Shown one piece after another: positions 32,401-62,943 of a DNA stretch of 64,000 bases. Source of the DNA: Cycas panzhihuaensis (lineage: Eukaryota > Plantae > Cycadophyta); the NCBI GenBank assembly GCA_023213395.1, contig CM041465.1, forward strand, positions 48,739,741 through 48,803,740, given 5' to 3'. The position numbers were made by a program, and so were the translations under genes. Within the stretch, counting starts at the first letter, position 1; each line of letters starts with the position of its first letter. The notes under the pieces are model-generated. The model was not told the DNA's origin, searched no databases, and was given only the letters and a program-made list of their open reading frames with translations.

Positions 32401-33383
32401 TATATTCTTTTTCATAATTTTTACAACCAAGTGGTAAACAAAATCTTGGGTTAGCTTTGAAGTGCATGACATTAACTATTTGAGATATAGTTAAAGCTCT
32501 TAGTTTTTCTTGAGGATCTTTGATCTTAAATAACCTTTGCATTTTAGCTAATTAATCATTATAAAAAGAATGAATGGCACCATGTTTATCTTCTATATTA
32601 TTTGATGGCAAGATGCCATCTTAGTTTAGTACCACTAATTTGTGGTTGTGTACTTTGATAAACAACCCCAAATAACCATCTTTACATAATAACACTGCGA
32701 TGTTTGGGTTACTACATTTTAGTAGATCTCCTTTTTGCATTGTTGGAAGATTGTCAAACCTTTTTCTTAGTGCTCTAACTCTAATTTTTACTTTTTTAAG
32801 CTTTAGCATTGCAACTACTATATAGTTCTTGTATTGGCCTCGTACTTTTTTGGCATTTTTGTTTAGTTGATGTCTTATGTCATTATGTTCCCTTATAGAT
32901 GATTTTAGTTGTTGGACACCTAATATATATATATATACACACAATAATATATATTATTTATTTATGAGTGTTGACTTATAGATTTCACACCACCTATGAG
33001 ATCGGTACACTTGTCAAGGTAACACAGGTTGTAATCTAGTTTAGGATACAGTCAACATAATCATCACACAGATTTATTCACTATTCCACCCAGTTATGTC
33101 ACAGTTTACAAACAACAATACAGTAATCATCACATATTTAGCAATTCATCCTCATAACATACAAAGAATTCACATTTCCACGTAACTCTTATTTTATTAA
33201 GCAACAAGTCCTTATACAAAAGGTGCTGGAATGCATTCCCTGTGCATTCCAACCACATACACTGTTGCTATCACATGTATACTCGAAAGGTACACATCAA
33301 TATACACAACTTAGGCTGTTGTCATACGTACTGGTCTCCGTACCAATGTGTGTCTGAATACTTGGCTTTCACCCTAGAGAGTA

Positions 33384-38107: not shown

Positions 38108-39022
38108 GAGTATACCGTAGGATTGAATCACTTAGCTCTCACACTGGAATGGTCCTCAAAGCATCATTAAATATGTCCCTTTGATGCCTTTTGGGTGAAA
38201 GGTTATGACCCAAAGTCATAACCATACCTTTTTGTCACTAAGGTACCCTTTCACTTTAACACTTGATTAAGTCTCCTTAATGGTGTCTTTTCTAATCCGT
38301 ACATATGTCCTTTTGGGCTGACGTCATCATTTCTAGGTGCCTTTGGGTCAGATCTGTCTATATGTACCTTACTATCTGCAAGTGTACCAAAAATGGTACA
38401 CATCTTGTAATGCATACCCAAAAGGTACGTATTTGTCAGACGTACCGAGATTGCATATTTTCTACCTTTTTCCACTATGCGTACCTCCATATAGTCTATA
38501 CCTGCATTCCTCTAATCAATACAAGCCTGTATTCCATCTTCATCAAGGTCTATGTGTCAAAATATGTCTCAACATCTATCCCAAGTCAACATGATGGGTT
38601 TGAGCATCCTTGCTTAATAAAAATTTAAAATTTGGGGTATTCCTCCCCCTCTCTGTTCTAAGGCTGCCCCTACTACCTCTGTTCTACTGCTTGGTTGCCA
38701 TTCTTAGTTAATAAATCATCATCTATTGGAACTTTTTTTTTTTAATGCCTTTGTCTTGTTTTGTTCAACTTTCCCTTGATTTTTTGTATGATAATTTATC
38801 TTTCCTCCATGCTTTACCATATTACTTATTTGTATGATATGAGTTACGATTGTTTTTCTGTTTTTAATTTTTTTTTGTATTTTATGTTATATACCGAATT
38901 GAATCACATTCCAGTATCAAGGCAATTCGATTTTGCCTCAACTTCATGCAACACGTTATAGTACAACCAGCTGATTCAACTAGTAAGTTGCTCCACCCTA
39001 GTTAATATAGGGTTTCAATTTA

Positions 39023-42000: not shown

Positions 42001-42697
42001 CCTGGGAGATTGTACCGGTGTCCCACCTAGTGGTGATTCTTTCCATTTTTCCTCCTCACTGGATTCTATCTCCTCTCCTTCACCCTTTTCTTTTGAAGAT
42101 GTGTTTGGAGTGCTTACTGCAATATTATCTTTCCCAAATAATGGATTCTTAAATGGTGTCTTTAGATGTATAGGTTCTGGCACACCTAGCACTTATACTA
42201 TCAATGGTGTAATCATTATGTATGATTGATCAGACCCTCTGTCTGATGAATCCTAAAAAAGATGCTTTGTTAGATTATTTTTCCAATATGCTAAAGGACC
42301 TTCCTCCGCCTTCTTCTTGTTGTCACTTAGGTCCTTCGGGGTGCCTTCCACAGGTATACTTTCCTCCTTCCTTAGAGTGTCTTTATGTTCCTTATCCACC
42401 TTTAGTTTTTCTTTATATTCTGGGCTAAATATGTCATCCTTGATTGGGGCTGATGTTAGTACCATTTGTTCGCCATTGTTTCCCTCTCCTTGTTCCTGAG
42501 GTGTCTTGGCTCCACTTGCCTTAGATTCTTCAACGAACTGTCCCTTAGTCTCGTTATTTTGCGAACTTAGTCTTCTTGCCCTTCTCAGTTTTGACTCTTT
42601 TGACCATCGTAATGCTCTCTGTCTACTTGTTTCTTTCCCTTTAGGTGAAGTATCCTTTTATGGATCTTCTGCCTTTGAAGGCCTCTTAGGTGGCATT
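39023..42697 (-). pseudogene. Element A coding region: Gag (4 CCHC knuckles), protease, linker, integrase C-terminal GPY/F; no RT, RNase H or integrase core
   Basis: Start MPPK; gag FACTLRGVPLAWY. Knuckles CHICEESSHTTKEC, CHIYDMDTHTTNDC, CSICLYFRHWKLKC, CNNCGPSEHQTKDC. Protease IMDRGVVVNVLP...ALLGRPWL. Tail LKMHWKGPYMIEKVYQNGTIRL. Confidence 0.85.
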
Positions 42698-43035
42698 GGA
42701 AGGTCCCCTGGTTGTCAGAGGCTTAGTTACAGTCTGCCATCACGACGATAGCCAGAGTCCTCTATCCTTTACACATCCCCCTTGTGAAACTCCTAGGCCT
42801 CGTCCCTTCTCAATGGATGTAGGCAACAGAACCAATGTTGACTTATAGATTTCACACCACTTATGAGATTGGTACACTTGTCAAGGTAACATAGGTTGTA
42901 ATCTAGTTTAGGATACAGTTAACATAATCATCACACAGATTTATTCACCATTCCATACAATTATGTCACAGTTTATACACAGTGTTGGAGTTAATCGTTA
43001 TCACTCCACTCCCACCTTCCAACCAGGACTGTACA
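42644..43035. repeat. 392-bp direct duplication, copy 1 (copy 2 at 49006-49397), flanking element C
   Basis: ggtgaagtatccttttatgg...ccaggactgtaca is present twice, with ~8 mismatches. Confidence 0.95.
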
Positions 43036-46000
43036 TGGTAGAATACCACTCTTTAATGATAATTGCACACTAATATAATAAGCAAATAACTCCAAAAGAG
43101 CACTTATATTGCAATACCCTTCGAGGGGGCAACCTCCCAATTACATGTAAATAACAATGATATTCAAGATATCATACTCTAAGGATTACACAAATATATA
43201 TATGTCTCTATGCTTACTACTCAACCGTCTCCTTATGCATGTGGGATATTACATGAATATATATAGTGTTCAATGACCACTACACAACCTTCTACTTATG
43301 CATGTGGGATAATAAGAAAAGGGAAGAAGTAGAAGAAATAAAGATATAAGAGAGAGAAGAAGTACAAGATATAAGAGAATATAAGAGAAGGTAAGTTAGG
43401 GTTGGATCCTAACAAAGTCCCCCCAAAAAGCTTTGCCCTCAAAGCTTGGTGATCTCAGTGCTCTAGGACAAATTGTTCATTCTTCGTGTTGCATCTTATG
43501 GAAGTTGTTTCCATTTGATGAGATACTCAATGATTTGTCTGGATCGTAGATGTCGAATTCTTCGGTCGATGATACATTCTGGAATGAGTTGAAGTTGCCC
43601 CTCCTCATTTAATATAGGTAATTCTATTTAAACTTGTACTTGTTGCCCAATTACCTTCTTGAGACATGAAACATGAAAGACATTATGGATCCTTGATAAT
43701 AGTGGTAAGTCCAAGGCATATGCAACTTCACCAATCTTCTTGAGAATTTTGTAAGGTCCATAATTGTAACTTATGTTGCCCATTCCGTTTGAGAGATTCC
43801 TGCTTATACGGTTGCAACCGTAAGTATACCCAATCACCTGGTTGAAACGCTCGTTCACTTCGCCCTTTATCTGCTTATTGTTTCATCCGATTTTGTGCAA
43901 GGTTCAAATTTTCCTTGAGCAGCTTAAGAATATGTGTTGTTTGTTGGATGTGGTCTTCGACTGCTTGAACCTTAGAACTGATTATGGCATAGTTTTTAAA
44001 TGTGGGTGGTTCATAGCCATATAATGCTTGGAACAGAGTCATTCCTGCTGATGCATGATAGGTTGTATTATACCACCATTCTGCTAAAGGAAGCCAATGA
44101 TACCACTGCCCCTGCTTATCTGAAGCATAACACCAAAGGTATCCTTCAAGGCACTTATTAACCACCTCGGTTTGTCCATCATTTGTGGATGGTAGGCTGA
44201 GCCCATTGTTAGTTTAGTACCAAGTAGATGGAAGAGTTACGTCCGAGAGTTCTTTGGTAAACTTGGGATCCCGATCACCGACTATACATTTGGGCATCTT
44301 GGTGCAACTGTGTATATCCTTTAAAAGACCTCGGAATTTGCTTTGCCTTATATGTGGCGAATGCCACAAAAATGAGCATATTTAGTTAGCCTATCAACAA
44401 CCACCAGTATAGCATCTTTTCCTTCTGACTTGGGCAGACCCACGATGAAGTCCATAGAGATTTCTTCCCATCGTTGATTTGGTATGGGAAGGGGTTGCAA
44501 TAATCCTAGAGACTTATTTGTTTACATCTTATGCCGTTGATAAATTTCACATGAGGAAACATATCTCTTTACATCTCCTTTTTGTCCCTTCCAAAAGAAG
44601 GATTGTTTTAAGCGGTGGTATGTTCGTAGGAACCCTGAGTGACTTGCTGTTGGAGAGGCATGTGCATCATGTAAAATTTGCTCCTTAAGGCTAGAGTGAG
44701 GGCATATATATATTCGATTCTTATACCAGAGAATATTTGAAGACCATGTATAATGGGTTGAATGCCCTACTCCAGCTTGAAGGTCTTGAATGATCTGCTT
44801 TGTAAAGGAGTCTTCATCCCATTCTTGTTGGCATCGCTATCCAAGAGGATTATTTGTTGTGATAGAATATAGTGCGAGCCTTCTTCCTTACGAGATAAAG
44901 CATCGTGACTATATTATTCTTGCCTTTTTTATATATTATTTCAAAGTCCAAAGCTTGCATTTTGGTGACCCATTTTTGTTGTTCCTCAGATGATGTCCTT
45001 TGAGATAGAAAATATTTTAAGCTATCATGGTTCATTTTAATTTGGAAATGTGTTCCCAATAAATATTGTCGCCATTTCCTAACTGCATGAAGAATTGCTA
45101 ACATCTCCTTCTCATAGGTGGACTTGACTTGTTCCTTGAGTGTAAGTTGACGACTTTCAAAAGCCAAAGGTTTTCCTTCTTACATTAAGACTGCTCCAAT
45201 GCCTTGCCCCGATGCATCACATTCAATGGTGAAGGTCTTTGTAAAGTCAGTGTTGCAGGGCTGGTGTGGTAGTTAAAGCCGACTTTAGGTGTTCAAATGC
45301 TTGAGGCCTTATCATTCCAATGAAAAGAACCCTTTTTTAACAAATTGATTAAAGGGGAAGCAATCCTTGCATAGCCTTGAACAAACTTTCGATAATATCC
45401 AGTGATTCCTAAGAATCCACGAAGGCCCTTGATGTTTTTAGGTTTAGGCCAGTTTGCGATAACTGCTATTTTCTTAGGATTCACCTTGACTCATTCTTGA
45501 GAGATGATATGGCCCAAATATTCTATTTCTTGCCCAAATTGACATTTTGATTTTTGCATAAAATTTGGTTGTCTGCAAGCACCGTAATGCCTTATCAACA
45601 TCTTGAAGATGGTCTTCCACGTCTGTTGAAGATCAAAATGCCATCAAAAAAGACTAATATGAACTTCCTTAAGTAAGGTTGAAAGAGTTTATTCATGAGT
45701 CCTTGAAAGGTGGATGGAGCATTAGTCAAGCCAAATGGCATGACTAAAAATTCATAGTGACCTTCATGTGTACGAAATGCAGTTTATGAACATCCTCTGC
45801 TTTGATCACGATTTGATGGTATCACATTGTAAGTCCAATGATGTGAAGAACATTACTCCATGGAGTTCATCCAAGAGTTCATCAATGACTGGTATAGGAA
45901 ATTTATCCTTGATGGTTATCTTATTGAGCTCATGATAGTCTACACACATGCGAAATGAGCCATCCTTTTTCTTACTAAAATCAGTGGCGAGAAAAAGTGC

Positions 46001-49000
46001 TTTTACTTTCCCTAATAATACCAGTATTAAGGAGTTCTTGAACTAGTCGTTCAATTTCATCCTTTTCTTTGGTAGGGATCTTAAGGTATGGTCGAATACA
46101 AGGAGGATTACTTCCAACTACCAGGTCAATGCTATGATCTTGGTCACGTACTGGGGGAAGACCTTGAGGAATATTTTGAAAGACCTGGTTATGGCGGTGA
46201 AGTACCAATTTTAAGTCATTTGGTATACCATCATCTTGGAGAATGTCCCCTTCTGTTGGAAGTTCTTGACCTTCTAGAGCATAACGATTCCTATACCACC
46301 CTTTTTAATAAGCCTCTCCATACGATGTGAGCTGATGATTTGGGTTGGTGGAGGAATGATCCCATTCAATTGATAGTCAATTCCTTCAGAAGTAAATCGG
46401 ATGAAGAGCTCCTGCATATTTAGTTGAATGGTCCCTAGTGGTTTGAGCCATTGTACCCCTAATACAACATCAACTACTCCAACTTGAATGGCATACATAG
46501 AAGTGGAGAGGTGATAGTCACCCATTTGCAACTTGATATTGTGACATTTTCCCCCGCAAGCGAGTGTCCCTCCATTAGCCACCATAACCTGAAAATTTTT
46601 GACAGGATATGGAAAGCGATTGAGTTCTTGACAAGTTTCCGATTAATGAAATTATGGGTACTCCCAGAATCTATGAGGACAACCACCTTCCTTTTCTTAA
46701 TGTACCCAATAAGTTTGAGTGTCGAGGGGCCGCAATTCCGGTAGGGCATGCACCGATATAGTAGCAGTATCTTCTTCTGCCTCCTCAGGTGGGTCACAAT
46801 CATTATTTTCTGGCTCTAATGAGGCTTCTTCTACTGGTTCCTCATCTTGAACATCCTCAATTATAAATAAGCGTCGTTCAGGACACTTATGGTCTTTATT
46901 CCACTTTTGGTTACAACGAAAACATAACCCTTTCAATCGTTTCTCATCCATCTCTTGGGAAGTCATTCGTCGTACACCAGGAACCTGAAATTGTGGTCGC
47001 TTTTTTGGAAGTGTTCGTTGGGGGGGTCGGGATGCCTTATTTTTTGCTTCAATGTGTCGAGCAAAATTAATAGCTGTAGAGATGTTATTAGGTTTTAAGA
47101 GTCGCAACTCATGTATGATGTCATCTCGTAACCCACCAATGTATAGCTCAAGTAATTTATCCTGACAAAGACCATCAACCCTTGTGGAGAGACGTTGGTA
47201 TTCTCAGTATAAGTCAAAGCAGTCCCCTCCTGTCTAACTTTAGCTAACTGGTTAAAGTGGTCCTGATCCCAGGTACTGTCATATTGAGCTATAAGATCTT
47301 TGACAAAACCCTCCCATTGATAACTAAGCCCACCAATTGTTTTCGTAACCCATTGGTACCATTGGTAGGGTTCAGTTTCCATGTGTAAAGAAGCAAGTGG
47401 GATCTTCTTATCTGCTAGAACTTGATGAAGAGAAAAGTACTATTCCATTTGGGTGATCCAAGTGCGTACATCTGTGCCATTGAACTTCCTGATTTCTACC
47501 TTGGGAAGGAAGTTTGGATGAAAGCGCCTACCATCATTACCTTCATCTTCTTTAGCAAAGTGACCCCCACCTATGTGAGTAGTATCATCAAGGTCACTCT
47601 TTTCTTCCTTAAGAGGTTTCATGGATGTGAGCTCTAGCATTCGCTTCAATTTTTCATTGAAGTCATTCTGGATTTGTAATATATCTTCTCGAAGTTGTGA
47701 AACAGCATCATTGAGATCTTGGGTCCAACTTGGGTTCATCTTAGGGGCCATTAGTCCACAAGACCTAAGTTGGAATCTTGGTTGGTAAATGTGATTGAAA
47801 AGGATTTGACGGGGTGTCTATAGACTGTTATCCCCAATATGAGGCAATATGGATTTTTTGCTTTTGCTTTTTCGCCTTTTGCTTTTGCTTTTTACTTTTT
47901 GCTTTTTGCTTTTTGGGCCTTTGGTTGGGTACGGACTATGTCTTGTGAGCGATAACCATGATGGCTAGAGACACTCGATTTACCAAATAGATGATGGTGA
48001 CTCATCGGCCAGACTAAGTGCGCACAACCCACTAATAGGTGACCCGGTACACTAGGTATGGGCTTGTCCGGTTTGTAGGCCCTCAGATATACTTATCCCG
48101 CACGTAAATAATATCAACTTACGGAGGCAAATGCTCTACTCTATAGTTGTACTACCGCCTCTAAGTGCGTGGAGAGTAACTTCCGGGGCTAACCGCTTAG
48201 GTGCACTACAAATTGCAGACGGTCAATAGGTTTCCTATGGTTACCTATACTAGGAAGGCCTATCTAGGGGTCCTCCTATATACCCAGTGCACGTGAGGCA
48301 CAATTCGTGGCCGAGTTACGCCAGGCTTGATTCGAGTGTGATCTCCAGGTCCTTCACGCAAGGGATGGAAAGCCACAATGCGCTTAGCCCAAAAGCAGCG
48401 GATCCTCGTGATATTTATAAACCCGACACGGGGTCTCTATCTAAATGCAAAGAGAAGCGCCTTTGGCAGTGTTAGGGTAGCTGCCCGATTGCAGTGTTAT
48501 CTACCCCAAAAAAGCAAAGTAACTAAATGGAAATCAAATGAGAATAGGTACTAATGAGAAAAAAATGACAGAAAAAATTGATTATTTAGTACCTTGACTC
48601 TCCCACAAGGAATGGATCGACCGCTCTGATACCACTTGGTAGGATACCACTCCTTAATGATAATTGCACACTAATATAATAAGCAAATAACTCCAAAAGA
48701 GCACTTATATTGCAATACCCTTCGAGGGGGCAACCTCCCAATTACATGTAAATAACAATGATATTCAAGATATCATACTCTAAGGATTACACAAATATAT
48801 ATATGTCTCTATGCTTACTATTCAACCGCCTCCTTATGCATGTGGGATATTACATGAATATATATAGTGTTCAATGACCACTACACAACCTTCTACTTAT
48901 GCATGTGGGATAATAAGAAAAGGGAAGAAATAGAAGAAATAAAGATATAAGAGAGAGAAGAAGTACAAGATATAAGAGAATATAAGAGAAGGTAAGTTAG

Positions 49001-49007
49001 GGGTTGG
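43036..49007 (-). mobile_element. Ty3/Gypsy chromovirus C (Reina-like), inserted in the 5' LTR of D
   Basis: LTRs at 43036-43414 and 48637-49007 (right one lacks the last ~9 bp; ~6 differences). PBS-Met rc gctctgatacca at 48623-48634; PPT rc aagtcccccc. Gag, [32 protein letters not shown], RNase H IECDASGQGIGAVL, integrase, and chromodomain IIEYLIKWKQLP. Multiple frameshifts. Confidence 0.93.
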
Positions 49008-49732
49008 TGAAGTATCCTTTTATGGATCTTCTTCCTTTGAAGGCCTCTTAGGTGGCATTGGAAGGTCCCCTGGTTGTCAGAGGCTTAGTTACAGTCTGCC
49101 ATCACGACGATAGCTAGAGTCCTCTGTCCTTTACACATCCCCCTTGTGAAACTCCTAGGCCTCGTCCCTTCTCAATGGATGTAGGCAACAGAACCAATGT
49201 TGACTTATAGATTTCACACCACTTATGAGATCGATACACTTGTCAAGGTAACACAGGTTGTAATCTAGTTTATGATACAGTCAACATAATCATCACACAG
49301 ATTTATTCACCATTCCATACAATTATGTCACAGTTTATACACAGTGTTGGAGTTAATCGTTATCACTCCACTCCCACCTTCCAACCAGGACTGTACACCT
49401 CATCAACCTCATTTTACACATGTGGGTGCTCAACATATGTAGGTAAGTTAAGGTAAGTTAATGTTAATTTGAGTTAGATTCATTTGAGTTAACATTATTT
49501 TATTGTTAATTTGAATTTCAGGGGTTGAGGAGTTTCTCTCATTCCCCAAAACTATAAATATTGAGGGGTGTACAACCCTGGTGCTTTTAGACACCGCCCT
49601 CATTTGGAAAATTTGTAATATTCACTTCTCACAATGGATTGAATATAGAAGTTTCATGTGTTTATGCTACAACAATGTATTGATGTATTGATCTATTGAA
49701 GTTTATTCTATGTGTTGCCCTGTTCTCCTACA

Positions 49733-49844
49733 ATATTATTTCTAACATTTGGTATCAGAGCATAGTTTAGCTCCATATTATTTCCAACATTTAGTATCAG
49801 AACTTAGTTTAGCTCCATATTTTTTCTAACATTTGGTATCAGAG
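49733..49844 (+). repeat. 42-bp tandem repeat of LTR end plus PBS (also at 56086-56197)
   Basis: atattatttc.aaca-tttggtatcagagc-ttagtttagctcc. CA ends fall at 49747/49789/49831 and 56100/56142/56184. Confidence 0.92.
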
Positions 49845-51006
49845 TAGACGATTGCTAGCCTGCTGAAAATTTTCAAAGAAGCAAGAAGATTTTGAAGCAA
49901 ATTTACTCAAGGAAGCAATATTGGCTACATTAATTTTCTGCAAGTTTTTTATATTATTTCAATAGATTTGATTATTATTGAGTTATTTTTGTGATATAAC
50001 AAGTATATTTCAGATTTTTTCACAGATTTGTGCAGATTTATAAAGGATTTCAACTACTAGTTATATTTTTTCAAAGATTTGTGAAGGATTTCAGCAGCAA
50101 GCCATATTTATCCAAGTTTTTTCTCAGATTTGAGCTATATTTCTTCAGATTTATATTTTTTTATCATATATTTTGCCATTTTTTGGTATATTCTTGTCTA
50201 TATTTCTAGATCTACGAAGGAGATCAGCATATTTCAGTTACAAACTATATCTTTTCAAAGATTTATGAAGGATTTTCAGCTGCATGTAAGATTTATTCAA
50301 GTTTTTCTTCATATTTGTGATATATTTTCTCAGATCTATATATTTTTATCAAAAATTTTACATTTTTCAAGAAGATTTCTATCTATTTATCCTATATTTT
50401 TGTAGATCTGCATAGGATTGCAGCTGCATACAATATTTACTCAAGTTTTTTCTCAGATTTGAGCTACACTTCTTCAAGATCTGCCTTATATTTTTCAAAT
50501 CTACTTATTTTGTCAAGTTTTTCAGCATTTTCTGCTATATTTGATTCAGATCTGCTATATTTCATTTCGGATCTGCTTATTTCAATAATTATTTCAATAT
50601 TTTCTAGTATATTTGTTGCAGATCTGCAACATTTAGTTCAAATTTGCTATATTTCATTTCAGATCTATATTTTTAACATATATTTGACCATATTTGTAAG
50701 TTCTTTTTACAGATATGCAATTTTTGAGGTATATTCAGCCTTCTGGAAAAGTTCAAACAACAGATCTCACTTCTGCAAGTCAGCTACAACCACATTTACC
50801 AGGTTTTTTAGTTGTTTTTTTTGTTTTAAACACATATTTTTGATATATCTACTGCAATATATTTGAAAAGATTTTAGATACATATATATGCATCTCATTT
50901 GCTTAATATATTTCTGTCAAAATATTTGAAATCTTCTGTTTTCATTTGTGCTCTATTAAATCAACAAAAAAAAAAAAAACTCAATATCTTTCATATTTTT
51001 TGTACA

Positions 51007-51009
<3 letters not shown>

Positions 51010-51081
<72 letters not shown>

Positions 51082-51151
51082 ATTTATTTATTTTAAAATA
51101 TTCTTCGCAGTCATTAGCTCATATTCAAAAGCTCAACATTTTTTCATGCTT

Positions 51152-51223
<72 letters not shown>
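51010..51223. repeat. (TA)n and (TA)n(GA)n microsatellites in the leader of D
   Basis: Direct reading. E has a (TA)n at the analogous place (~12882-12906). Confidence 0.9.
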
Positions 51224-51229
<6 letters not shown>

Positions 51230-52162
51230 CTTCGTTACAATATTGAGCAACCATTGGCTCATATCTAAAAGCTCAATAATGAATGACATTTTCTTTCTAT
51301 TTTTGAAAAGTTTAAAATTTTTTGTTATAAAATCTAGAGTACTCAGCTTGGGCGCCTTCAATAGACTTATTTGGCTTAGATTTAGAGCTTACATAAGTGA
51401 TTTTATGTTAGTTTTAACCCTGTGCTTCTCAAGTATTGACTTCTCTCATAAAAGTCACCAAATACTTGGCTGATACCATCAATACATATCAAGAAATTTG
51501 AAAGGCGGATGCTGCATTAACCCACTATAGCCTCTTTTTAAGTTATTCTAGAGCATTTTTTCCTGAAGATTTGCTTGAGAAGAGTCTTTGAAGGCCTCGG
51601 CTTTATAATGAATATTTTGAGAAAACTGAGTTGTTGATTAAGCCTTTACAAAACCCATTATTGTGGCACAAGCTTCTTGCATAGCTTGAACTATTTTGCT
51701 ACCAGAATCCTTTAACACAACCAGCAGGCATCCCATCTATCTTCACACAGCTCATTGAGGAAGCATAATACTCTAAAAAAAATATAGTTTGTGGGGCTTA
51801 TTTGTAACCCTGTCGGTGTTGAGCTTCTTCTCATAAGTGTGATGCTTTGCTTCTTTGAGCTGCCTTTTATAAGCATGATGCCTTTTTTCTTTACAGTTTG
51901 AATATTTTTTATACTTGTTTCTTTGCAATAATAATAAGAAAGTCTGACAACATTGAACTACTACACTTGTTAAGCATTTTTTCAACACGCTTGACCCCAG
52001 TTTGAAATCAGAAATTCAATATTAGCTACAACAACATCCATTTACATTATTTTTTTCAAACAAAAGCCACAATAAAAGTGGTGTTAAGTTGCCGATTTCA
52101 TTCGACAAAGTCATCCAAGTTATCATTGTTCCTACTGTAACAAGGAGGGCAACGCATACATT

Positions 52163-52290
52163 CTGCTAACAATAAATCCACTGCTGTTCGAACTGAACTG
52201 GCGCTTACATTGCCATGGGAGTGAGAAGTTGAGTTCTGTATGCACGCAAAACACTTTAACCACAGCATTCATAAATGGAGAGCATTTGGC
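52163..52290 (-). pseudogene. Captured fragment of a Deg/HtrA protease (Deg9/Deg2 type)
   Basis: [38 protein letters not shown], compared with Deg9-type [33 protein letters not shown]. Confidence 0.88.
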
Positions 52291-52294
52291 ATTA

Positions 52295-52443
52295 GAGCAT
52301 TTGGATGAAACCTCTTTGTATAGAGTTGCACCATTAGTTGAAAGATTTCATATCTTGGAGGGAAACAAGGTTCCACATATTTATAGATGTCAACAAGCTC
52401 TTCTACAATCATCTGTGCTTCTTCCAAAGCAGCTTTTAAATTC
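52295..52443 (-). pseudogene. SEC6: Captured fragment of exocyst subunit SEC6
   Basis: [45 protein letters not shown](+1)IQML, compared with SEC6 [49 protein letters not shown]. Confidence 0.9.
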
Positions 52444-52449
52444 TGTATT

Positions 52450-52560
52450 GTTAGTAGCCCTCTTTAGAAACTCTTCTACTTGCCTTCTTAGTTCAGGATT
52501 CAGTGCTAGGGTTTGCGTAAAGCATTGCGATAAGAACTGAATGGTCTCCTCCACCCACTG
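52450..52560 (-). pseudogene. CAS: Captured N-terminal fragment of exportin-2 (CAS/CSE1)
   Basis: [35 protein letters not shown], compared with the plant CAS start [30 protein letters not shown]. Confidence 0.85.
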
Positions 52561-52884
52561 AAGAAGATTGCTGGCAATAGTCCTTCCATCTGACATTTTG
52601 GATTATATGATATTCATGAAAACTGACTTATTAAGTTGTAGAAGTTGAGAAAGCTTCCTAGTTCGGACTATGAATGGTTGTGGAATATTGAACAACATTC
52701 CAATCTCTCCAACCACATCCCAAAGCTTCTCTGTTCCATCCTTGTAGGTGAATAAATCAACTGTTCCAGAGATGGCTACATACAACTCAGTAGGCGCCTT
52801 GTTTTGAAGGATCACATCTTCTTTTGAAGGAAGATATTCTGCAACTATCTCTGTCACCAATTGCATGAGGAAACCATTTGAAAG
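52558..52884 (-). pseudogene. Captured fragment of a Shaker-type K+ channel cyclic-nucleotide-binding domain (AKT/KAT/KC1 family)
   Basis: LSNGFLMQLVTEIVAEYLPSKEDVILQNKAPTELYVAISGTVDL...GEIGMLFNIPQPFIVRTRKLSQLLQL..FMNII*SKMSDGRTIASNLLQ. Contiguous, with no intron. Confidence 0.92.
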
Positions 52885-52962
52885 AACTGATCTTTGCCAT
52901 ACTGCGTAGATTTGATCGCCGTCCTTCATCTTTGTGTCACCACGCTTCCACTTCGCAATAAC

Positions 52963-53031
52963 TGCGCAAGCCATATTCACAGTATTCCACGAGACCAGAT
53001 TCTGTTAGGGCATTCTCTGAAAGAGCCTTCG
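52963..53031 (-). pseudogene. Captured fragment of a PLS-class PPR motif
   Basis: RRLFQRMP*QNLVSWNTVNMACA matches the ARRLFxxMPxRNLVSWNxxI consensus. Short. Confidence 0.7.
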
Positions 53032-54876
53032 ATTCTGGTAATTCAAACATCAAATTCCCAACCTGACTGGAAGAGTGCCCTTCACGCTTGGACACAGTGC
53101 CATCGTCAACATGAGTTATGTCTACACTCTCTATTTCGACCACGTTACGGGCATAACGACGCAAGGGAAAGGCGCAACGTGACGGTCGGTGGCGTCTGAG
53201 ATGGCGGCGTGACCCCATGCCTTAGTAATTTATGTTTTTTTCTTTTATTTTAAATATTTTTTTACATTTGGCGCAATCATTTGATGCGTTGATCGATCGA
53301 TCATTGATCGATCTCACCGTAATAAGCGGCTGATCACAATGACAACAAGAACCTTTGATTTTAAAAATTTAAAATTTTTTTTCTTTTAATAAAATTTTAA
53401 AAAATTTAATCATATTATATAAAATTTTCAAACCCGGGGTGTAAAGAGCCTAACCCCCTCTTGAGCCTCAGTCTCCAGTCCCATTTAGTCACTACGTGAC
53501 TGTCAGGGATCATTAAAGGGGCCAACACCTTTATAAACCTTTTTTTCTTTTTATTTTTTATTTTTAAATTTTTTATCCTACATAGGGTTACTCACAAATT
53601 TTTGCCATAACTCCTCACAGGCTTATCAGTTTCTAATGAAACTAGTTTCATTATGTCAAAAATTTTCTGTAGATTGATTTCGACTGGTCATATGACCAAT
53701 TTGATGCTGATTTGATCCCGTTTCAGTCGATTTAAAGTCAATTAGTCATTTTTTTAGCAATTTTTAAACTTTTACAAAATTATTTTTTGAACTGATTATA
53801 TTTTATTACCGGGTGACTATTTTATATCCACGTTTGTTCTAAAGTGATCTACGTTCAACAAAATTTATTACTCATTTTTTATTTTAATTTTTAAAATTTA
53901 TTTTGATCACTATTTTAATCGCCGAAAGTGGCACTTTAGTAGTTTTCAGTATTTTTCTTAACATTTTACCATAAAGGTACCTGTTGCCATTTCTACTATA
54001 ACTTCTCTGTTTTATATCAGAATTCAGTCCCGTCAGTTTCGTTGGGAAACTAACTCAATTCTCTTTGATATGACATAGTTTTTTATACGTTTTAACATAC
54101 TGTTACTGATTTTCAAATTGCTCAAAGTAGAGGTACCTAATTGTCTCCAACCTGCCATTTTTACACATTTATATATATATTTCTCAAAATTTTTTAGCTG
54201 AAAGTATATTGATTAGTCTTTTAAACAATATTTTATTATTTTTCAACATTTTATAAAGTTTTCTTAGCAATTTTATGCTTTTTGGAGCTCCTTGCTCCTG
54301 TTAGGCCTTAAAAGGAGGTCTATACATTTGAATAATTCAAATTTGACTTGTAGGAACCCGTTTTCAAAATGGATAGTTCCATTGGATAGATATTTTATTA
54401 ATTTTCATATTGGTGAAGTTTCATATTATTCTAACATCGTTTAGTATATTTTTGAAGCAACCAAACTTGAGGTTATCCTTTAAATCTTCTTTTAAAATGT
54501 TTCTTCATACTCCTTATCTTTCAAAGTAAAATATACATATATTTCAGTTTTTTTTAGTATTATATATTATCATCAAGGCTAAGAATTTATTTCATTAAAA
54601 ATTTATATTTATTCATTTGAAGAAAATCAAAAGGTTAAGGATTATTTCTTTTATCATCAAAGTTACATTTTATATTTGTATTGCTAAAAGGATCTTTATT
54701 ACATGCAAATTTGCTTATATATCCATCATTTCCTTACTGTGTCTAGTTGATTGACTTTCCAAAGTGCATTACATTTCTTTTGAAAAATATATTTGACATC
54801 ATATAAGTTTAGTCACTTATTGGCTTTATTTGATTTGATAAAAGTATACTTTTTATACTAAAGTTTTCTTAATAAA

Positions 54877-55680
54877 ATGACACAATTTCCTATATTCAAT
54901 GAATATAATTTTTCGTAATGGTATAGGACTATGCAAGACTATTTTATTGAACATGATCTTCTCAAATATTTACAACATGAATGTAATTTCAGTATTAAAG
55001 AAAATTTTAGAAAAGATAATGAAACATTAGGTTTATTATTTTGTAGTATGAATGATGATGTTTTTTCAAAGATTTCTGTATTAACTACTTCTAAATCAGT
55101 TTAGGATATATTGATTTCTACTTATGGGTGAGATACCCTCTATGTATTTGATGATATTTTTGATGAGCATATGATGCAGGTGACAGAACAAGTGAATCAT
55201 AATAACAACAACCATGAAGATTCAGATCAAATATAGGACTAACTTGCTATACAAGTACATGATTCTCCATTTGAAGGGGAGAATGAATCTTATGACATGA
55301 TGGAAAATGAATCTTATGATATGATGAAGAATGAATCTTATGATATGACGAAGAATGAATCTTATGATATAACAAAGAATGAACTTGATAATATAACAGT
55401 TGTTCATAACATAAAGACTACAAAAGATAAAGTTCAAGTTCAAAGCCTTCTTAATGTTTCAATTGATAAAGTCAAAATTACATCTATTCATCTACATTTG
55501 AATCAAGTTTCATCTACTTATAGTTTCTTTACATCATTCCATGGTAAAGAGACATATGTGGCTATAAGGATGAGAAGAGTTGATAAAGATCAAGATCATA
55601 ATTTCAAAGTTTTTTTCAAATACAAGTTCCATAAGTTTAAGGAGAAAATACAAGTGTTCGTGATGATCATTAAGGGGGAG
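54877..55680 (+). pseudogene. Element D ORF: Copia Gag N-terminal half fused to an acidic repeat region
   Basis: MTQFPIFNEYNFS*WYRTMQDYFIEHDLLKYL...KDNETLGLLFCSMNDDVFSKISVLTTSKSV*DILISTYG. In frame with ORF 55297; 24-bp repeat NESYDMMK x4-5 at ~55281-55400. Confidence 0.75.
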
Positions 55681-57420
55681 AATGTTGGAGTTAATCATAA
55701 TCACTCCACTCCCACCTTCCAACCAGGATTGTATACCTCATCAACCTCATTTTACACATGTGGGTGTTCAACATGTGTAGGTAAGCTAATGTTAATTTGA
55801 GTTAGTTTCATTTGAGTTAAGTTATCATTATTTTATTATTAATTTAAATTACAGGGGTTGAGGAGTTTCCCTCCTCCCCTAAAATTATAAATATTGAGGG
55901 GTATACAATCCTGGTGCTTTTAGACACCACATTCATTTGGGAAATTTGTAATGCTCACTTCTCACAATGGATTGAATATAGAAATTTCATGGTTTATGCT
56001 ACATTACAACATTGATGTATTGAAGATTTGTATTATTGTATTGATCTATTGAAGTTTATTCTATGTTCTGCCCTGTTCTCCTACAATATTATTTCTAACA
56101 TTTGGTATCAGAGCTTAGTTTAGTTCCATATTATTTCCAACATTTGGTGTCAGAGCTTAGTTTAGCTCCATATTATTTCCAACATTTCATATCAGAGCAA
56201 TACAATAATCATCACATATTCAACAATTCATCCTCATAACATACATAGAATCCATATTTCTACGTAACTCTTATTTTATTAAGCAATAAGTCCTTGTACA
56301 AAAGGTGCTGGAATGCATTCTCTGTGTATTCCAGCCACATACACTATTGTTGTCACATGCATACCGGAAAGGTACACATCAATATACAAGGCTTAGGCTG
56401 CAGTCATACGTACTAGTCTCTATACCAATATGTGTCTGAATACTTGGCTCTCACCCTGGAGAGTATACCATAGGATTGAATCACTGAGCTCTCACACTGG
56501 AATGGTCCTCAAAGCATCATTAAATATGTCCCTTTGATGCCTTTTGGGTTAAAGGTTATGACCCAAAGTCATAACCATACATTTTTATCACCAAGGTACC
56601 CTTTCATTTTAACACTTGATTAAATCCCCTTAATGGTATTTTTCTGATCCGTACATCCGTACATATGTCCTTTTGGGCTGACGTCATCATTTCTGGGTAC
56701 CTTTGAGTCAGAAATCTGCAAGTGTACCAAAAATGGTATGCATCCTATAATGCATACCCAAAAGGTACGTAACTAGGTATGTATCTGTCATACGTACCTA
56801 AATTACATATTTTCCACCTTTTTCCACTATGCGTACCTCTGTATAGTCCGTACCTTCATTCCTCTGGTCAATACAAGCATGTATTCCATCTTCGTCAAGG
56901 TTTATGTGTCAAAATATATCCTAACAATGAGTGCCAACATAAATTCTAGTAATTGATACTTAAAATCCATATAAAAAAATTTAAAGTTTTTGTGACCTAA
57001 GGCTTAGTTTTTCAACTAAGAAATTCATACACTAAGAATATTCTTAAAAAAAAGAAAAGAAAAAATGAGAGGATATTGTCCGTTTAAAAGAAATATCCAT
57101 TTTTTAAATTGGATGTACTTAAGGTTGTGGCTTTAAGATATAATGAGCATTTATATTATTTTTTGTCCTTTTTCTCTTAAACTTGTTAAAAGTACTAGTC
57201 TGTATATATGGCGTCAACATCTATTTCTTTTAAGGAAGATGAGACTACCACTATAAAGTTAGAGACAACAAATCATTCACAACAAGAAGGCATGCTCACA
57301 TCTATTTATTATTATTTTTTATGGGATGTGATCTAGACTAGGAATCATTCTATAATACTAGTTATGGTGGCAACATTAGCTTGCAAAAATGTATGGGTGA
57401 AACATTGTTAGAATTAGAGA

Positions 57421-60400
57421 TGTTAGAGTGGCTAAGTGTTAACCTCATAGTTAATTAATGTAAATATGGTTAATTAGTACATTGATTAGTTAAATGGTCA
57501 TGATTAATGAAAAGTCACATATCTTTAGATGGACACACCATATGGTTTTAAACATATACCAATCCCTAGGTTGGATGTATCATCTCATTGTGGTGTGATC
57601 AATGTAATGATTGATTTGGCTTAGTGGGTCTTTTCATAAAAGGATTTCCCCATGTATAGTGAGCATATTGTTCTTTATTATTTGATGCTTGCTATGTATG
57701 CTAAAGATTTGCATGTATGTTGTGCATATTAAACCATTCACAATCTTTACATGGTACCGAACCATAGAGGAAGTTTAAGAGGGAGACAAAAGTCATTTAA
57801 AGTCATACAAGGGAGAAGTTTAGGCTTTTACATTCGTGAAGGCTTTGTGATGAATTGGTGACTATTGAAAATCAAATTTTCCTATGTAGAGAAGTTGTAT
57901 GATATACTTGCTATAGTGTTGAAGTGAGTAGAATCAAATTTAGGTCAGTTAATGTGATTTGAATCAATTTTTGTGTGTGGAAGGTCATCATCTAAGTAGC
58001 ACATTTAGAGCTGCAACAACTCACAAAAAGGTCACAATCGAGTTTTATCAAATTTAAGTTATTACAAGCAATGGCAAATCCCACAAAGCAGTGGCAACAG
58101 TTGGGTGAATATGCCCTTTAACATATTCAAAATCATTTCAAATTCAAGGAAAAGATGGGAAGCTTTGTTTTGAAATCATCCCTCCAAATTTACTTATCAT
58201 TTCATCATTTTTCTAAGTGATTTATGATTTTTTTTTGGAGGAAGTGAATTTTGTGTGAAGTATTTCATTTAGACTTGTTATTTTAAAGCTGATAATGTTT
58301 TGTTTTGGTTTATTATTTACCATTTGAAGCTATTCTAGAGGGTTACTTGGTGTGTTTTGGCAACCTGTTTATGGTGGGTGCAAATGCATTGAGCCCTGAG
58401 CCTATGCAAATTTGGTAGTAGTGAAGATATACACTTAAAACCATTAAAATATTGTATTTTTTAGTGAATTGTTGATGAATGGAGATTGAACAATATGTAA
58501 AGTGTTACCTAATTAAATAAACATCAAGTAGTTTGGAATAAAAGACCCATTTATAAGCTCATTTCTCATGATGGATAAGCTGATGCCCTGAGTTATCTTC
58601 AATAGGAACAACTTCAGTGAGTGGAAGGCAAACAGAGAGTTGGTGTTGATAGTGAGTCAAATATGTATCATCATCAAAGACAAGTTATTGGCCATTTCAT
58701 TGGATGAAAATAAGAGAACTTGTATGGAAAGGAAGTTGTTTATAGATGTGGGACTATTGAAGTTATTTCTGACACTAGACTAGAGGGCTCTAGTCCACAA
58801 CCCAAAGAAACCAAATGAAATTTGGGTAAAATTATTTGAAACATTTGAGAAGAAGAAGATAAATTGTTATGTTGCTTTGATGATGGAGCTTCTTAACACC
58901 ATAATAGAAGACACAAGTAATAGAAGCACCTACTTGAATAAGATAAAGGATTTGAGGAACAAACTAGAGGAGGTAAAACTTGACTTAGTGGATGATGCAT
59001 TGTTGTTTACAATAATCATGCCAAAACTATTGGTAACATTTATCTTTCAAACCATCTATGTAAAGGATGAAGTAATAGAGGGTGAATCATTTGAGTTATT
59101 GAAGAATCTCATTTTAGTCAAGGAAATTGAAGCACTATAATAATTCCAAATTCATCTATCTTAGTCACAGAGACATATATGAGAGATGATGTTCATGAGG
59201 GAAAGTGTACATAAAAATTAGGAGAAGCATCTTAGGGGAAGAAGAAGTTTATCAGTAAATGTAACTATTATAAGAATGATGTCCACTTGTAGAAGAGTTA
59301 TTGGTTTAACGGGCAAGATAAACGGAAAGCAAACTAGGATGATAAGGGGAAGGGTATTACCACTTATTATGTAGAAGTGTCATCCTTATCAATTGAATCA
59401 AATCAAAGAGATTATTGGATTTTGGACTTAGGTACATAGAGAAACATCTCTTTTTAGAAGCAAAACTTTGATGCATAGAATGATAGTCCTAGTGATGTAA
59501 AATTCATTCTTGGGAATGCAAGTGTGGTGCTTATTCAGGGTGTTAGCATTATTTTACTTACAAATGGAAAATTTAAGGGACTGTACTATATACTTAAAAT
59601 GAAAAAGAATCTTCTATCAACCTGAGAGATACACAAACAAGGTATGAAGGTTGAGCTCTTTAAATACAAATGCTTAATTAAGGATCCAAGGAAAAAATTC
59701 TTTGTCATTGCTACTAGAAGAGTGAAAGATGATTTTTTGATGTTCTAGAAGTTTGACTCTCATAATCAAATTAATGCTTTTATTGTTAGTATAGATGGTG
59801 TGAACAAACAATGGTATAAACACCTTGGTCACCTTAATTATAAAAGCATTAAACTTATAAATCGTTTGAATATATTGGAAGGATTACCCTAATGTTTCTT
59901 GTTCAAGGGGTATATGTAAAGGATGCACTTATGGGAAGCATCATTGCTATCCTTTTGCTTAGGATTGTGCTTAGAGAGTTACGAAGAAGCTAGAGCTTAT
60001 ATATATTGATTTGATTAGTCTTCTTTTAAACACTTCTATATCTAGAGCTTGCTATACTTTGGTGTTTGTAGACAACTATACTAAGAAGGCTTGGGTATAT
60101 TTTCTGAAGAGTAAGTTTGAAGTATTTGATTGCTTTCGAGAATGAAAGATATATGTCAAGAATGAGTGTGATATGAAAATTAAGATTTTGAGGAGTGATA
60201 ATGATAAGGAGTACATTAATCGTGCCTTTAATAAATTCTACTTGGATCATGGTATTAAATAGGAACTAACTATCCCCTACATCCAACAATGAAACAATGT
60301 TGTTAGGAGAAAAAAAATCATACCATAATAGAAATGGAAAGGTGTATGGTGTATACAAAGAACTTGCCACCTATGTTTTGGGTAGAAGTTCTTGGGATTA

Positions 60401-62943
60401 TCGTTGATATCCTAAATAGGATATCGATAAAGGCAGTTTGTGGCATGACTCTTGAAGAGAATTGAGATGGTCCTAAACCTACTATTGACCATTTAAAGAC
60501 CTTTGGATGCATTTCATATGAATACATCCTAAATGAAGATAAAAAAAAGTTAGATTATAAGAGTTTTAAGTGCATATTTATGGGGTATTTAAATCATAAT
60601 AAAGTTTATAGACTAGAAAATCCATAGGGAAGAAAACCTTGCTATTAGTTAGGTCTCAAAGTTTGATGAGTCTAAGACATGTCGTGCTAAAAATACATTA
60701 TCTTAAAAAACCTTTTACTCCCCACTACTTTCATTTCTTGTTGGTATTTCATTAGTAACAAAGGTTGAGGAATAAGCCACTATGATTCAAAAGGAAGAAG
60801 GATCAAGTGGAGAAGGTGATAATGAGGAGTTATGACATGAGTAGGCACCAATAACATCAAATGCTTCGATGTCATTGTGGGCTAGGATGACCATTGAGGA
60901 TTCAAGTGTGACACTACAAAAACTTACAGATGAATGATGAATGATGAATGAGGAGCCAACGTGCTAATTAAACTTTGATGGTTAACACCATGAACTTCCA
61001 AGCCCCTACTTCATATGATGAAGCAAAATATGATCCTTATTTGAAGGCTTCTATGGAGAAGGAATTTTGTTTTTTGATTAGAAATGCCATATGGGTGTTG
61101 GTTCTATTGCCTCCTAAGAAAAACCTTGCTAGTTGTAAGTGAGTTTATAAGACCAAGTTTTACTCCAATGGAATGCTAGATAATTATAAGGTGAGACTTG
61201 TTGCATAAGGGTTTAAGTAGAAAGAAGGGATCGATTATGACAAGATATTTGCACCAGTCTCTAAGATGATAATGGTTAATTTAATCCTTTTATTGGCAAC
61301 AAAACATAGCTGTGAGTTACACTAAATGAATATGAAATTAACATTCCTTAATAGAGAGTTGAAATTGGAGATTAACATGGCACAACCTCTAAGTTTTATT
61401 TAAAAAAGACAAGCATCTTGTATGCTGTTTGAAAAAATAATTTTATGGACTAAAGCAAGCACCATGTGCTTAATACACTAAAAATGATGCTAGATTAAAA
61501 GAAGAGGGATTTTTTACCACATACCTAGAGCTAAATTTATTTATTCAAAGGAGAGAAACTCCAATAGTAGTTATTATGTTGTACATTACTAATTTTTTCA
61601 TTACTGGCAATTGGAATAAGACTATTATGGGAATAAAATCTAATTTAGAAGAAACTTTTAACATGACAAATCTTGAGACTCTACACTACTTCTTGGGCAT
61701 TGAGGTAAGGTAGATGAAAGGTAAAATTTTTGTGTCATAAATAAAACATGCGAAGAGCTTTGTTAAGAAGTTTAAGATAGAGGGCTGTGAATTTGTTAGA
61801 ACACCATGCACCAATGACACTAAGCTCATGAAAGATATGCATAAACCTGCAATAGATAGAACATTATATAAATAATTGGTAGGGAATCTCTTCTACTTGA
61901 CTCATAATAAGCCAAGTATTATATACACTATTGGGTTGGTTTTTTACTACATGTAGGTGCCTAAGAACTATGTTGGGTTACCATGAAAAGGATTTTGAGG
62001 TATGTGAAGGGAATTTTATATGTTAGTTTGGAATACCTTTGACATACAAAAACATAGCTAGTTGGATATATTGGTGTTGATTGGGATGGAGATGTCAATG
62101 ATTATAAGTCCATAGTTGGATGCATTTTTCGTATTGGTAATGAACCTATTTCATGGTAGTCCAAGAAGTAAAAGATAATCACATTATCTTCCAATGAGGT
62201 TGAGTATCAAGGTCTATCTATTAGTGCAAGGGGTGTTGTATGGTTGCAAGGACTACTTGATATTTTGGCAATATAAAGCGGTATGTCAATCATACTAATT
62301 GATAATTAGAATACCATTTATTTGTCAAAGAATCTAGAGTCCCATGCCTATATGAAGTATATAAAGATGAAATACCATTATATTTATGAGTAGATTCAAG
62401 TAGAGAAGTTGTAGATTGAGGACTATATGAGCAAAGATTAACTTGAAAATGTATTTATAAAGGTAGTTATTGAAGATCAATTCATAAAGCTTTGAACTAA
62501 GTTGGGACTTCGTGAAATTATCCTTGAGGGAGGATGTATCAACAAGGATAATTCTTGCCTTCACCTAAAGATTTCTAACTGAAGCCTAATTCATCATATT
62601 TCTATTAAGAGGGCATGTTAGAGTGGCTAAGTGTTAACCACATAATTAATTAATATAAATGTGGTTAATTTGTGAGTTAATTAGTTGAATGACCATGATT
62701 AACAAAGAGTCACATCTTTTTAAATAGATGTACCATGTGGATTTAAATATATACCAAGCCCTAGGTTGGATGTATCATCTCATTGTGGTATAATCAATGT
62801 AATACTTGATTCAACTTGGTAGATTTTTTCTTGAAAGGATTTTTCCATGTATATCTAATGCATTATTCTTTATTATTTGATACTTGTGTATGCTAAAGAT
62901 TTAGATGTATGTTGTGCATGTTAAACCATTCACAATCTTAAGA
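57421..62943 (+). mobile_element. Old full-length Ty1/Copia element F
   Basis: LTRs at 57421-57751 and 62616-62943, strongly diverged. TSD AGAGA at 57416-57420 and 62944-62948. Decayed PBS tggtaccgaacc; PPT taagagggca. Decayed gag, integrase, RT and RNase H in Copia order. Confidence 0.9.

Follow-up and report, generated by a model that had tools for sequence, protein, structure and literature searches.

The window analysed here, 64,000 nucleotides of the Cycas panzhihuaensis contig CM041465.1 (assembly GCA_023213395.1, positions 48,739,741 to 48,803,740 of the forward strand), contains an element, called D below, with the features of an LTR retrotransposon and an array of short host-gene pieces in its 5' leader (Table 1). 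The array is situated between the PBS and a gag remnant and is antisense to D. It does not lie directly behind the PBS, as ~1.4 kb of leader separate the two.

Element D, the carrier of the array

The two LTRs of D are 86% identical, and the last ~110 nt of the 5' LTR consist of three tandem units of "LTR end + PBS-like" sequence. The PBS is of the copia type, being complementary to the 3' end of initiator tRNA-Met (tRNA-iMet). The sequences flanking D are two halves of one sequence, which is found uninterrupted in a paralogue at 33050-33190, with a paralogous empty site for D at about 33110; of the target-site duplication only 4 of 5 bp match (CACAG/CAGAG). The gag remnant corresponds to positions 1-65 of the Retrotran_gag_2 profile (E 0.016, below the cut-off), and no pol ORF was found in D by inspection of ORFs and translations or with Pfam. 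An earlier reading, made without database searches, had described D as a pol-less LTR element, and this description is correct: LTRs, PBS and PPT are present and a pol ORF is absent. Because of the LTR pair, the TG start, the PBS, the PPT, the gag remnant and the rejoined flanks, we regard D as an old, crippled, non-autonomous LTR retrotransposon of the Ty1/copia type that carries an array of host pieces in its leader. The first part of this leader is ~62% identical over 830 nt to the corresponding region of another element of the window, E. The high-copy repeat located further downstream in the leader is probably one or more nested transposable elements; at the joint 53742>54239 contigs skip 496 nt with TA..TA ends.

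Table 1. Features of element D, in coordinates of the window.
Feature	Position	Strand	Evidence or remark
Element D	49345-56197	+	Ty1/copia-type LTR element, non-autonomous
5' LTR	49345-49844	+	begins TGTTGG
PBS	49834-49844	+	TGGTATCAGAG, adjoining 5' LTR
Leader with ~95-190-nt sub-repeats	49845-50740	+	common to element E (11667-12436)
Two overlapping pieces (51557-51696, 51630-51797)	51557-51797		transcript-like contigs, ~92-93%
Further piece	51994-52109		transcript-like contig, depth 194, loose ends at 51994 and 52109
Deg9-type (Do-like 9) protease piece, about residues 99-135	52165-52293	-	PDB 5il9/5ila
Exocyst SEC6 piece	52296-52441	-	Pfam PF06046
Importin-beta-family N-terminus-like piece	52442-52605	-	ESM Atlas lead
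K+ channel piece, AKT1-type Shaker (AKT1/KAT1-type): C-linker end and CNBD	52606-52887	-	PDB, Pfam
Piece without match	52888-52959	-	translation
PPR-like motif, FQRMP*QNLVSWNT, ~20 aa	52960-53031	-	by eye in translation
GC-richer piece, 93-aa ORF, ATG at 53218	53032-53218	-	ORF call
Module conserved between D and E	53325-53552 (E 14584-14798)		~64% identity
High-copy repeat in leader	53572-54890		summed contig depth 5,000-55,000
Copia gag N-terminus remnant	54919-55101	+	Pfam Retrotran_gag_2, translation
PPT	55672-55682	+	AAGGGGGAGAA, directly 5' of 3' LTR
3' LTR	55683-56197	+	match to 5' LTR

Identity of the array pieces

The array comprises at least 5-8 pieces, which are short (about 70-280 nt), tightly spaced and derived from unrelated host genes. 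All identified pieces lie on the minus strand, in different frames and with stops and frameshifts, and they do not form a fused ORF. The sequence-only reading had recognized a head-to-tail series of minus-strand host fragments at 52163-53218, and this observation holds, with the K+ channel, SEC6 and Deg9 pieces identified, whereas the assignment of a further piece to CAS/exportin-2 was not confirmed and the PPR piece is recognized by eye only. The K+ channel piece aligns with residues 375-474 of the structure 7fcv in PDB (E 2e-24) and matches the Pfam family cNMP_binding (2.6e-7), with 261 matches in a representative library. The SEC6 piece matches its Pfam family with an E-value of 5.4e-9, above the curated cut-off, while the Deg9 piece was identified by PDB only (E 1.3e-14), its ORF (52132-52272) having no match in Pfam.

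Additional evidence for the borders of the pieces comes from transcript-like contigs, assembled from a run (X24) that bears the same species label and that we guess to be RNA. These contigs align with individual pieces at ~91-93% and continue beyond them, on both sides, into dissimilar sequence. Positions 1193-1337 of one of them, 2755 nt long, coincide in extent with the SEC6 piece, with 13 mismatches, and the loose ends of the contig over the Deg9 piece fall at 52165 and 52293; judged by such ends, the gap between the Deg9 and SEC6 pieces is 2 nt. Another contig spans 52936-53041, over the PPR-like motif, which is too short for an HMM. The earlier reading had also placed further pieces on both flanks. 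In the flank 51480-52160 the contigs indeed point to at least three additional pieces, at 51557-52109, including the two overlapping ones, which are matched by separate contigs that run on unlike, whereas the flank 53032-53218 is without any match. Six further minus-strand ORFs of the region 51638-52272, including the Deg9 ORF, have no match in Pfam.

For the piece at 52442-52605 an ESM Atlas lead to IBN_N/exportin clusters (score 0.93) is the sole support, with no match in Pfam, PDB or the homologous-protein search; it probably includes some 5' UTR. The 93-aa ORF has no match in any of these three or in ESM Atlas, and the piece that contains it is almost absent from three DNA runs (depth 0-3 at 53042-53147). 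The length window of the homologous-protein search leaves out full-length parents, and its blanks for these two pieces therefore mean little.

Spliced RNA as a template and spread of the array

No intron interrupts the K+ channel piece at 52729|52728, where a conserved intron position falls. This position was deduced from partial ORFs of other species rather than from the Cycas parent gene: in four independent ORFs homology ends right after G-x-E(Q/S), and in three it starts just before GDVxGEIG. Since the piece is intron-free across this position, its template would have been a spliced RNA, and at least this part of the array appears to be a copy of a mature transcript, if the intron position of the other species applies. 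The presence of a conserved exon-exon junction within the piece agrees with the transcriptome fragments postulated in the earlier reading. The piece is short of 18 nt at the same place, and genomic contigs that carry these 18 nt are also contiguous there; they could be the parent gene, if the intron is absent here. A single contiguous genomic segment was rejected as the source of the whole array, because the genes represented are unrelated and each piece has its own matching contigs, which diverge at both ends.

In three related species (organisms A, B and C), genomic contigs of 85-90% identity run through 52063-52275, 52370-52526 and 52556-52713. The internal junctions of the array are present in these contigs, and thus the array was transposed as a unit: the chimeric element retrotransposed after capture. 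Most differences between copies of the array are C>T/G>A changes, and its pieces are decaying passengers. The summed contig depth drops stepwise along the array toward a conserved module (see below), a gradient that could also reflect deletions or an unrelated repeat within 51240-52090. A joint 53264>53599 seen in other copies was set aside as a possible effect of alignment between direct T-rich repeats (53229-53261/53542-53574).

A conserved module and a second array

The module consists of a nested stem-loop and CTTTATAAA, followed by a T-rich run, and it borders the arrays of both D and E. On the plus strand it folds with modest z-scores of -1.8 and -2.8. The array of E is a different one, also antisense, with a WDR5 piece beside the homologous module; the WDR5 match in Pfam is weak and the only one for this array, and PDB gave nothing for E 14035-14259. 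E is not a simple second member of the D family, as its D-like 5' part is joined at about 14800 to a different copia element, and its 3' part has a pol end, PPT and LTR like those of a third element, G. The leader of G (57750-58870) contains no obvious host pieces.

The sequence-only reading had proposed a dedicated cassette that accumulates fragments serially instead of by a one-off capture. Serial accumulation is plausible in view of the array of E beside the same module and of the stepwise depth, but the gradient has other possible causes. A dedicated, adapted device is not shown, with stops and frameshifts in the pieces, copies whose differences are mostly C>T/G>A and RNA runs in which the array is missing. 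In this copia lineage, the leader appears to be a place of repeated capture and not a device built for the purpose.

Origin of the antisense array

In published cases, host sequences captured by LTR elements are usually in sense orientation (PMC7264820), and therefore the antisense polarity of the array needs an explanation of its own. The identified pieces are complements of mRNAs on the plus strand of the element, so the simplest route would be switching by the plus strand. Pieces would be added by the reverse transcriptase of the element, by template switching onto host mRNAs inside the particle: the growing plus-strand DNA, in the course of second-strand synthesis, would switch from the minus-strand DNA onto an mRNA, hop from mRNA to mRNA, and re-enter the element next to the module with its stem-loop and TATA-like box. 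The chimeric element then retrotransposed and carried the array along, as its internal junctions in related species show. Such a route would explain why the pieces are antisense. With run-off of the plus strand, the high-coordinate ends of the pieces should tend to fall on mRNA 5' ends, and the importin-like piece and the piece with the 93-aa ORF look like ends of this kind. An old copia element that gathered host mRNA pieces in its leader in this way is the reading we consider fairly likely. It has been also considered that the leader contains a built-in hot spot, where the plus strand repeatedly leaves for packaged mRNAs, returns beside the module and stacks antisense pieces of spliced germline transcripts, a possible source of antisense RNA or siRNAs directed at essential host genes; this is a tentative proposal, about which we are rather doubtful.

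An unlikely alternative is that the array is another mobile unit inserted backwards in the leader of D, such as a Helitron, a Pack-type DNA transposon or a chimeric processed pseudogene made by a LINE. Reverse transcriptases of LINEs likewise switch from mRNA to mRNA and are known to yield intron-free head-to-tail chimeras, the leader of D holds other nested repeats (the high-copy repeat and the 496-nt indel with TA ends), and at its low-coordinate edge the array is rich in T. Around the block, however, there are no TIRs, no end with a hairpin and CTRR, and no clear poly(T) or target-site duplication. A simple scan of both strands of 50700-54000 revealed no GC-rich hairpin followed by CTRR-T, inverted matches within 51225-53620 are limited to AT-rich low-complexity sequence, and the T-rich edge contains no clean poly(T), the exact edge of the array being undefined. 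The earlier reading had named a Helitron or Pack-MULE with its own termini as the competing possibility; with neither TIRs nor a hairpin and CTRR end, a TIR element or a Helitron was rejected as the carrier, which is an LTR retroelement. Besides, the K+ channel piece is intron-free, unlike typical captures by Helitrons or Pack elements, and at the equivalent place in E, next to the same module, lies another antisense array of different content; recurrence of this kind would call for repeated backward insertions at one spot.

It is also conceivable, and compatible with an LTR retrotransposon carrying host pieces in its leader, that the array is a working part, with the module as an antisense promoter, or with antisense host pieces in the element RNA giving rise to small RNAs or decoys that act on parent genes or on silencing. 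The TATA-like box and stem-loop of the module are conserved between D and E, the module adjoins both arrays, and the first downstream piece on the minus strand opens with an ATG. Against this function, which we find quite improbable, stand the lack of the array in any RNA run, the transcript-like run, which gave contigs of the parent type only and none that bridges a junction, the stops and frameshifts in the pieces, the C>T/G>A differences as found in silenced repeats, and the modest fold scores of the module. Finally, plants are known to fill gaps during break repair with short stretches copied from elsewhere, frequently several in succession and linked by microhomology, but filler DNA from double-strand-break repair in the leader, serially copied from ectopic templates (cDNA or RNA), is a very improbable source of the array despite the short pieces that abut without spacers, as it should produce random orientations while all identified pieces are antisense, it needs RNA or cDNA templates for intron-free pieces, and the like array at the same place in E points to replication of the element itself.

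LTR elements are known to capture gene pieces, usually in sense orientation in the published cases. A lineage that strings many spliced host pieces always backwards at one place of its leader would point to an undescribed route of replication error, the switching of plus strands onto mRNAs, and its arrays would record the mRNAs that had been packaged. Essential genes (K+ channel, exocyst, protease) would then have antisense copies under transposon promoters, and cross-talk by small RNAs would be possible. In annotation, blocks of this kind also give rise to spurious gene models and paralogues.

Comparison with known systems

Maize Bs1 and other transducing LTR elements of rice, sorghum and maize (PMC13317346, PMC2774510) resemble D in being non-autonomous, in their intron-free pieces from several unrelated host genes and in the amplification of these together with the element. 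The captures of the Bs1 type are, however, sense to gag-pol and fused into an ORF, in contrast to the pieces of D, which are antisense, located in the 5' leader and without a fused ORF. The analogy with Bs1, drawn in the earlier reading, fails on orientation because transductions of this type are sense. In a survey of maize (PMC2774510), each LTR element with captured pieces had them from one gene only, as opposed to at least 5-8 pieces in D. The arrays of Helitrons and of Pack-MULE/Pack-CACTA elements are alike in their head-to-tail pieces of unrelated genes and in their amplification by transposons, but they copy genomic DNA including introns and have termini of their own, neither of which was found in the array of D.

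In yeast Ty1 retrosequences and in animal LTR-mediated retrocopies, the reverse transcriptase hops between co-packaged RNAs. Chimeras of the Ty1 type, like D, join intron-free host sequence to sequence of the element; they are formed during minus-strand synthesis and have sense orientation, whereas the polarity of D calls for a plus-strand switch or another polar step. Antisense content is also known from the additional ORFs of Grande, RIRE2 and Retand, which sometimes have their own promoter (PMC7264820). Those ORFs are situated between pol and the 3' LTR and are conserved family genes with no host homologue (PMC7264820), while the array of D is derived from the host, variable between relatives and located upstream of gag.

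The carrier element

Self-comparison of the window reveals an LTR pair (49345-49844 versus 55683-56197, 86% identity) beginning with TGTTGG, which delimits element D. Its flanks join up into a sequence that stands unbroken in a paralogous repeat at 33050-33190, so D is a discrete insertion. The 5' LTR is directly followed by TGGTATCAGAG, the copia-type primer site (PBS) for initiator tRNA-Met, which belongs to three tandem 'LTR end + PBS' units, and AAGGGGGAGAA directly precedes the 3' LTR. Positions 54919-55101 of the plus strand preserve part of a copia gag N-terminus (a sub-threshold match to profile positions 1-65 of Retrotran_gag_2, E 0.016), and no pol was found in D. These features together argue that D is a plus-oriented, non-autonomous copia-type element, in agreement with the pol-less LTR carrier of an earlier sequence-only reading. 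The array of host gene pieces is found in the 5' leader of D, ahead of gag and in antisense orientation to the element.

Each LTR ends (49733-49845 and 56080-56197) in three tandem ~42-nt units, each composed of the LTR end, the PBS-like TGGTATCAGAGC and some 13 nt. With the PBS absorbed into the repeat in this way, the units hint that plus-strand transfer was faulty and error-prone in the D lineage. The leader also holds tandem sub-repeats of about 95-190 nt (50000-50740; at 12160-12436 in the neighbouring copia-type element E) and, at 53572-54400 and probably on to about 54890, a repeat of very high copy number (summed contig depth 5,000-55,000, three species). There, a joint 53742>54239 skips 496 nt with TA..TA ends, pointing to a small nested insertion of TIR type at about 53743-54238. 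D itself is inserted within the LTR of another element (segments 32969-33384, 38107-38574, 49006-49344 and 56198-56926); the paralogous host LTR (32969-38574) is without D and is split by a younger element (33383-38107) with 96% identical LTRs. At 42644-43405 and 48634-49397 lie two 98%-identical blocks whose order is permuted (A-B and B-A), and in both places block A ends in the first 52 nt of the D LTR; either an element with 373-nt LTRs (B) and a flanking 392-nt duplication, or a rearrangement, could account for them.

Composition of the array

The minus strand of 51240-53330, translated in three frames, is a series of short coding-like stretches, with the frame changing between them. On sequence likeness, three pieces (K+ channel, Sec6 and Deg9; see the table) are identified beyond doubt, and the PDB and Pfam matches bear out the claim of unrelated host pieces on this strand. 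The K+ channel piece matches best AKT1 (PDB 7fcv residues 375-474, E 2e-24), as well as Pfam cNMP_binding (2.6e-7) and 261 entries of a representative protein library (top identity 62%). The piece at 52605-52442, previously called CAS/exportin-2, has no match in Pfam, PDB or a word-indexed protein search; because ESM-Atlas alone, with exportin/IBN_N as the nearest clusters, points in this direction, it may be called importin-beta-like only. The proposed PPR piece amounts to about 20 residues (FQRMP*QNLVSWNT) recognised by eye in the translation, with a contig of run X24 covering 52936-53041. A 93-aa ORF at 53218-52937 (-) is without match in any protein search made.

Logan contigs from four runs were aligned to 51240-54400 at 80% likeness. 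X24, a small run of 50 Mb bearing the same species label, has high-depth contigs of kilobase length; that it is RNA is only guessed. Its contigs match single array pieces at about 91-93%, the sequence beyond both ends being unlike the window, and they behave like parent transcripts of the pieces. These matches fix the piece boundaries, with a gap of 2 nt between Deg9 and SEC6, a tight spacing in line with the sequence-only reading, and show the flank 51480-52160, previously left unassigned, to consist of additional pieces.

Pieces, X24 contig matches and summed contig depth along the array
Feature	Positions	Strand	Match or value
K+ channel piece	52887-52606	-	C-linker end and cyclic-nucleotide-binding domain of plant Shaker channels
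Exocyst Sec6 piece	52424-52305	-	PF06046, E 5.4e-9, above curated cut-off
Deg9 piece	52272-52162	-	Arabidopsis Deg9 residues 99-135, PDB 5ila/5il9, E 1.3e-14
X24 match	52296-52441		positions 1193-1337 of 2755-nt contig; SEC6 piece
X24 match	52165-52293		Deg9 piece
X24 match	51994-52109
X24 match	51557-51696
X24 match	51630-51797
X24 match	52936-53041
Summed depth	51240-52087		about 100-1500
Summed depth	52088-52511		about 35-300
Summed depth	52512-52829		about 10-60
Summed depth	53042-53147		0-3

A relative element and copies of the array

D and E have in common the LTR start and leader (E 11667-12436 versus D 49345-50740), an AT microsatellite zone and a module bordering both arrays (14584-14798 in E, 53325-53552 in D, about 64% identical). 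The module holds CTTTATAAA, then a T-rich run, and a nested stem-loop (z -1.8 and -2.8); the sequence of its inner stem is not the same in D and E, but the pairing is kept in both. Between these landmarks the content of E differs from that of D and includes an antisense WDR5 piece (PDB E 2.4e-11). E was rejected as a clean element: from about 14800 onward its sequence belongs to another copia element, one related to G (57420-62939), and comprises the pol end, PPT and LTR of that element. The D-like part stops right after the module, and 14799-15920, comprising an RNase H end, the PPT GAGGGGGGA and an LTR beginning TGTTAACATGG, is 65% like G at 61830-62894.

Several joints within the array (52063-52275, 52370-52526 and 52556-52713) are spanned by genomic contigs of three related organisms, with identities of about 85-90%, which shows the array to be present in several copies and to have moved as a unit once assembled. 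Changes between copies are mostly C>T and G>A, like those of silenced repeats, and the array is present in no RNA run searched. The summed depth (single contigs having a depth of about 3-7) fits stepwise addition of pieces at the module-side end with amplification between steps; the same profile would arise from deletions or from an unrelated repeat on the left side.

Origin of the array

Splicing of the template was tested indirectly, by checking where homology breaks in short ORF-type proteins from many clusters among the K+ channel matches. In P0117, P0140, P0088 and P0139 it runs to G-x-E(Q/S), followed by unrelated residues; P0120, P0126 and P0142 have an unrelated N-terminal stretch, with homology setting in just ahead of GDVxGEIG. 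This pattern marks an intron that is conserved among Shaker paralogues and between species. At that position (52729|52728) the K+ channel piece continues without a break, which implies a spliced template, the intron position being inferred from other species and not from this plant's parent gene. Exactly at the conserved exon-exon junction (52726-52729) the piece is without 18 nt (6 aa), which could be a later deletion or an alternative splice acceptor. Two genomic contigs (X1 record 5 and X5 record 30) possess the 18 nt and are also contiguous across the junction; they could represent the parent gene itself, if in this species it is without the intron.

The analysis establishes a copia-type carrier, host mRNA-derived pieces, their position upstream of gag, propagation as a unit and antisense polarity of all identified pieces. 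We consider it probable (about 0.7) that a copia element captured pieces of spliced host mRNAs by its own reverse transcription and then amplified them. The pieces would have been added through template switching by reverse transcriptase. In minus-strand switching, the classical transduction route, they would come out sense, as captured pieces usually are (PMC7264820). If, instead, growing plus-strand DNA switched onto intact packaged mRNAs, the complement of spliced mRNAs would be placed on the plus strand of D, head to tail and in one polarity, with every hop toward the mRNA 5' end. The importin-like and 93-aa ORF pieces seem to contain an N-terminus, as run-off at mRNA 5' ends would predict. 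This plus-strand route is tentative, and accounts for roughly half of the probability given to capture by reverse transcription. A dedicated cassette is at most a possible reading of the array. A Helitron or Pack-type array, the alternative named in the sequence-only reading, is rejected, as there are no terminal inverted repeats around the block and a simple scan of both strands of 50700-54000 found no GC-rich hairpin followed by CTRR-T.

Comparison with known systems

The array is thus neither of the Helitron nor of the Pack type, nor does it resemble the conserved antisense ORFs of Grande, RIRE2 and Retand. LTR-captured fragments have been listed genome-wide for maize, rice and sorghum (PMC13317346), and in maize no LTR element with pieces of more than one gene was reported (PMC2774510). 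Closest to the D array is maize Bs1, in which sequence from three host genes is sense-oriented and has been fused into an ORF. What sets the D array apart from Bs1 and the listed LTR captures is how many pieces it has, their uniformly antisense orientation, their location in the leader, and that they recur in relatives.
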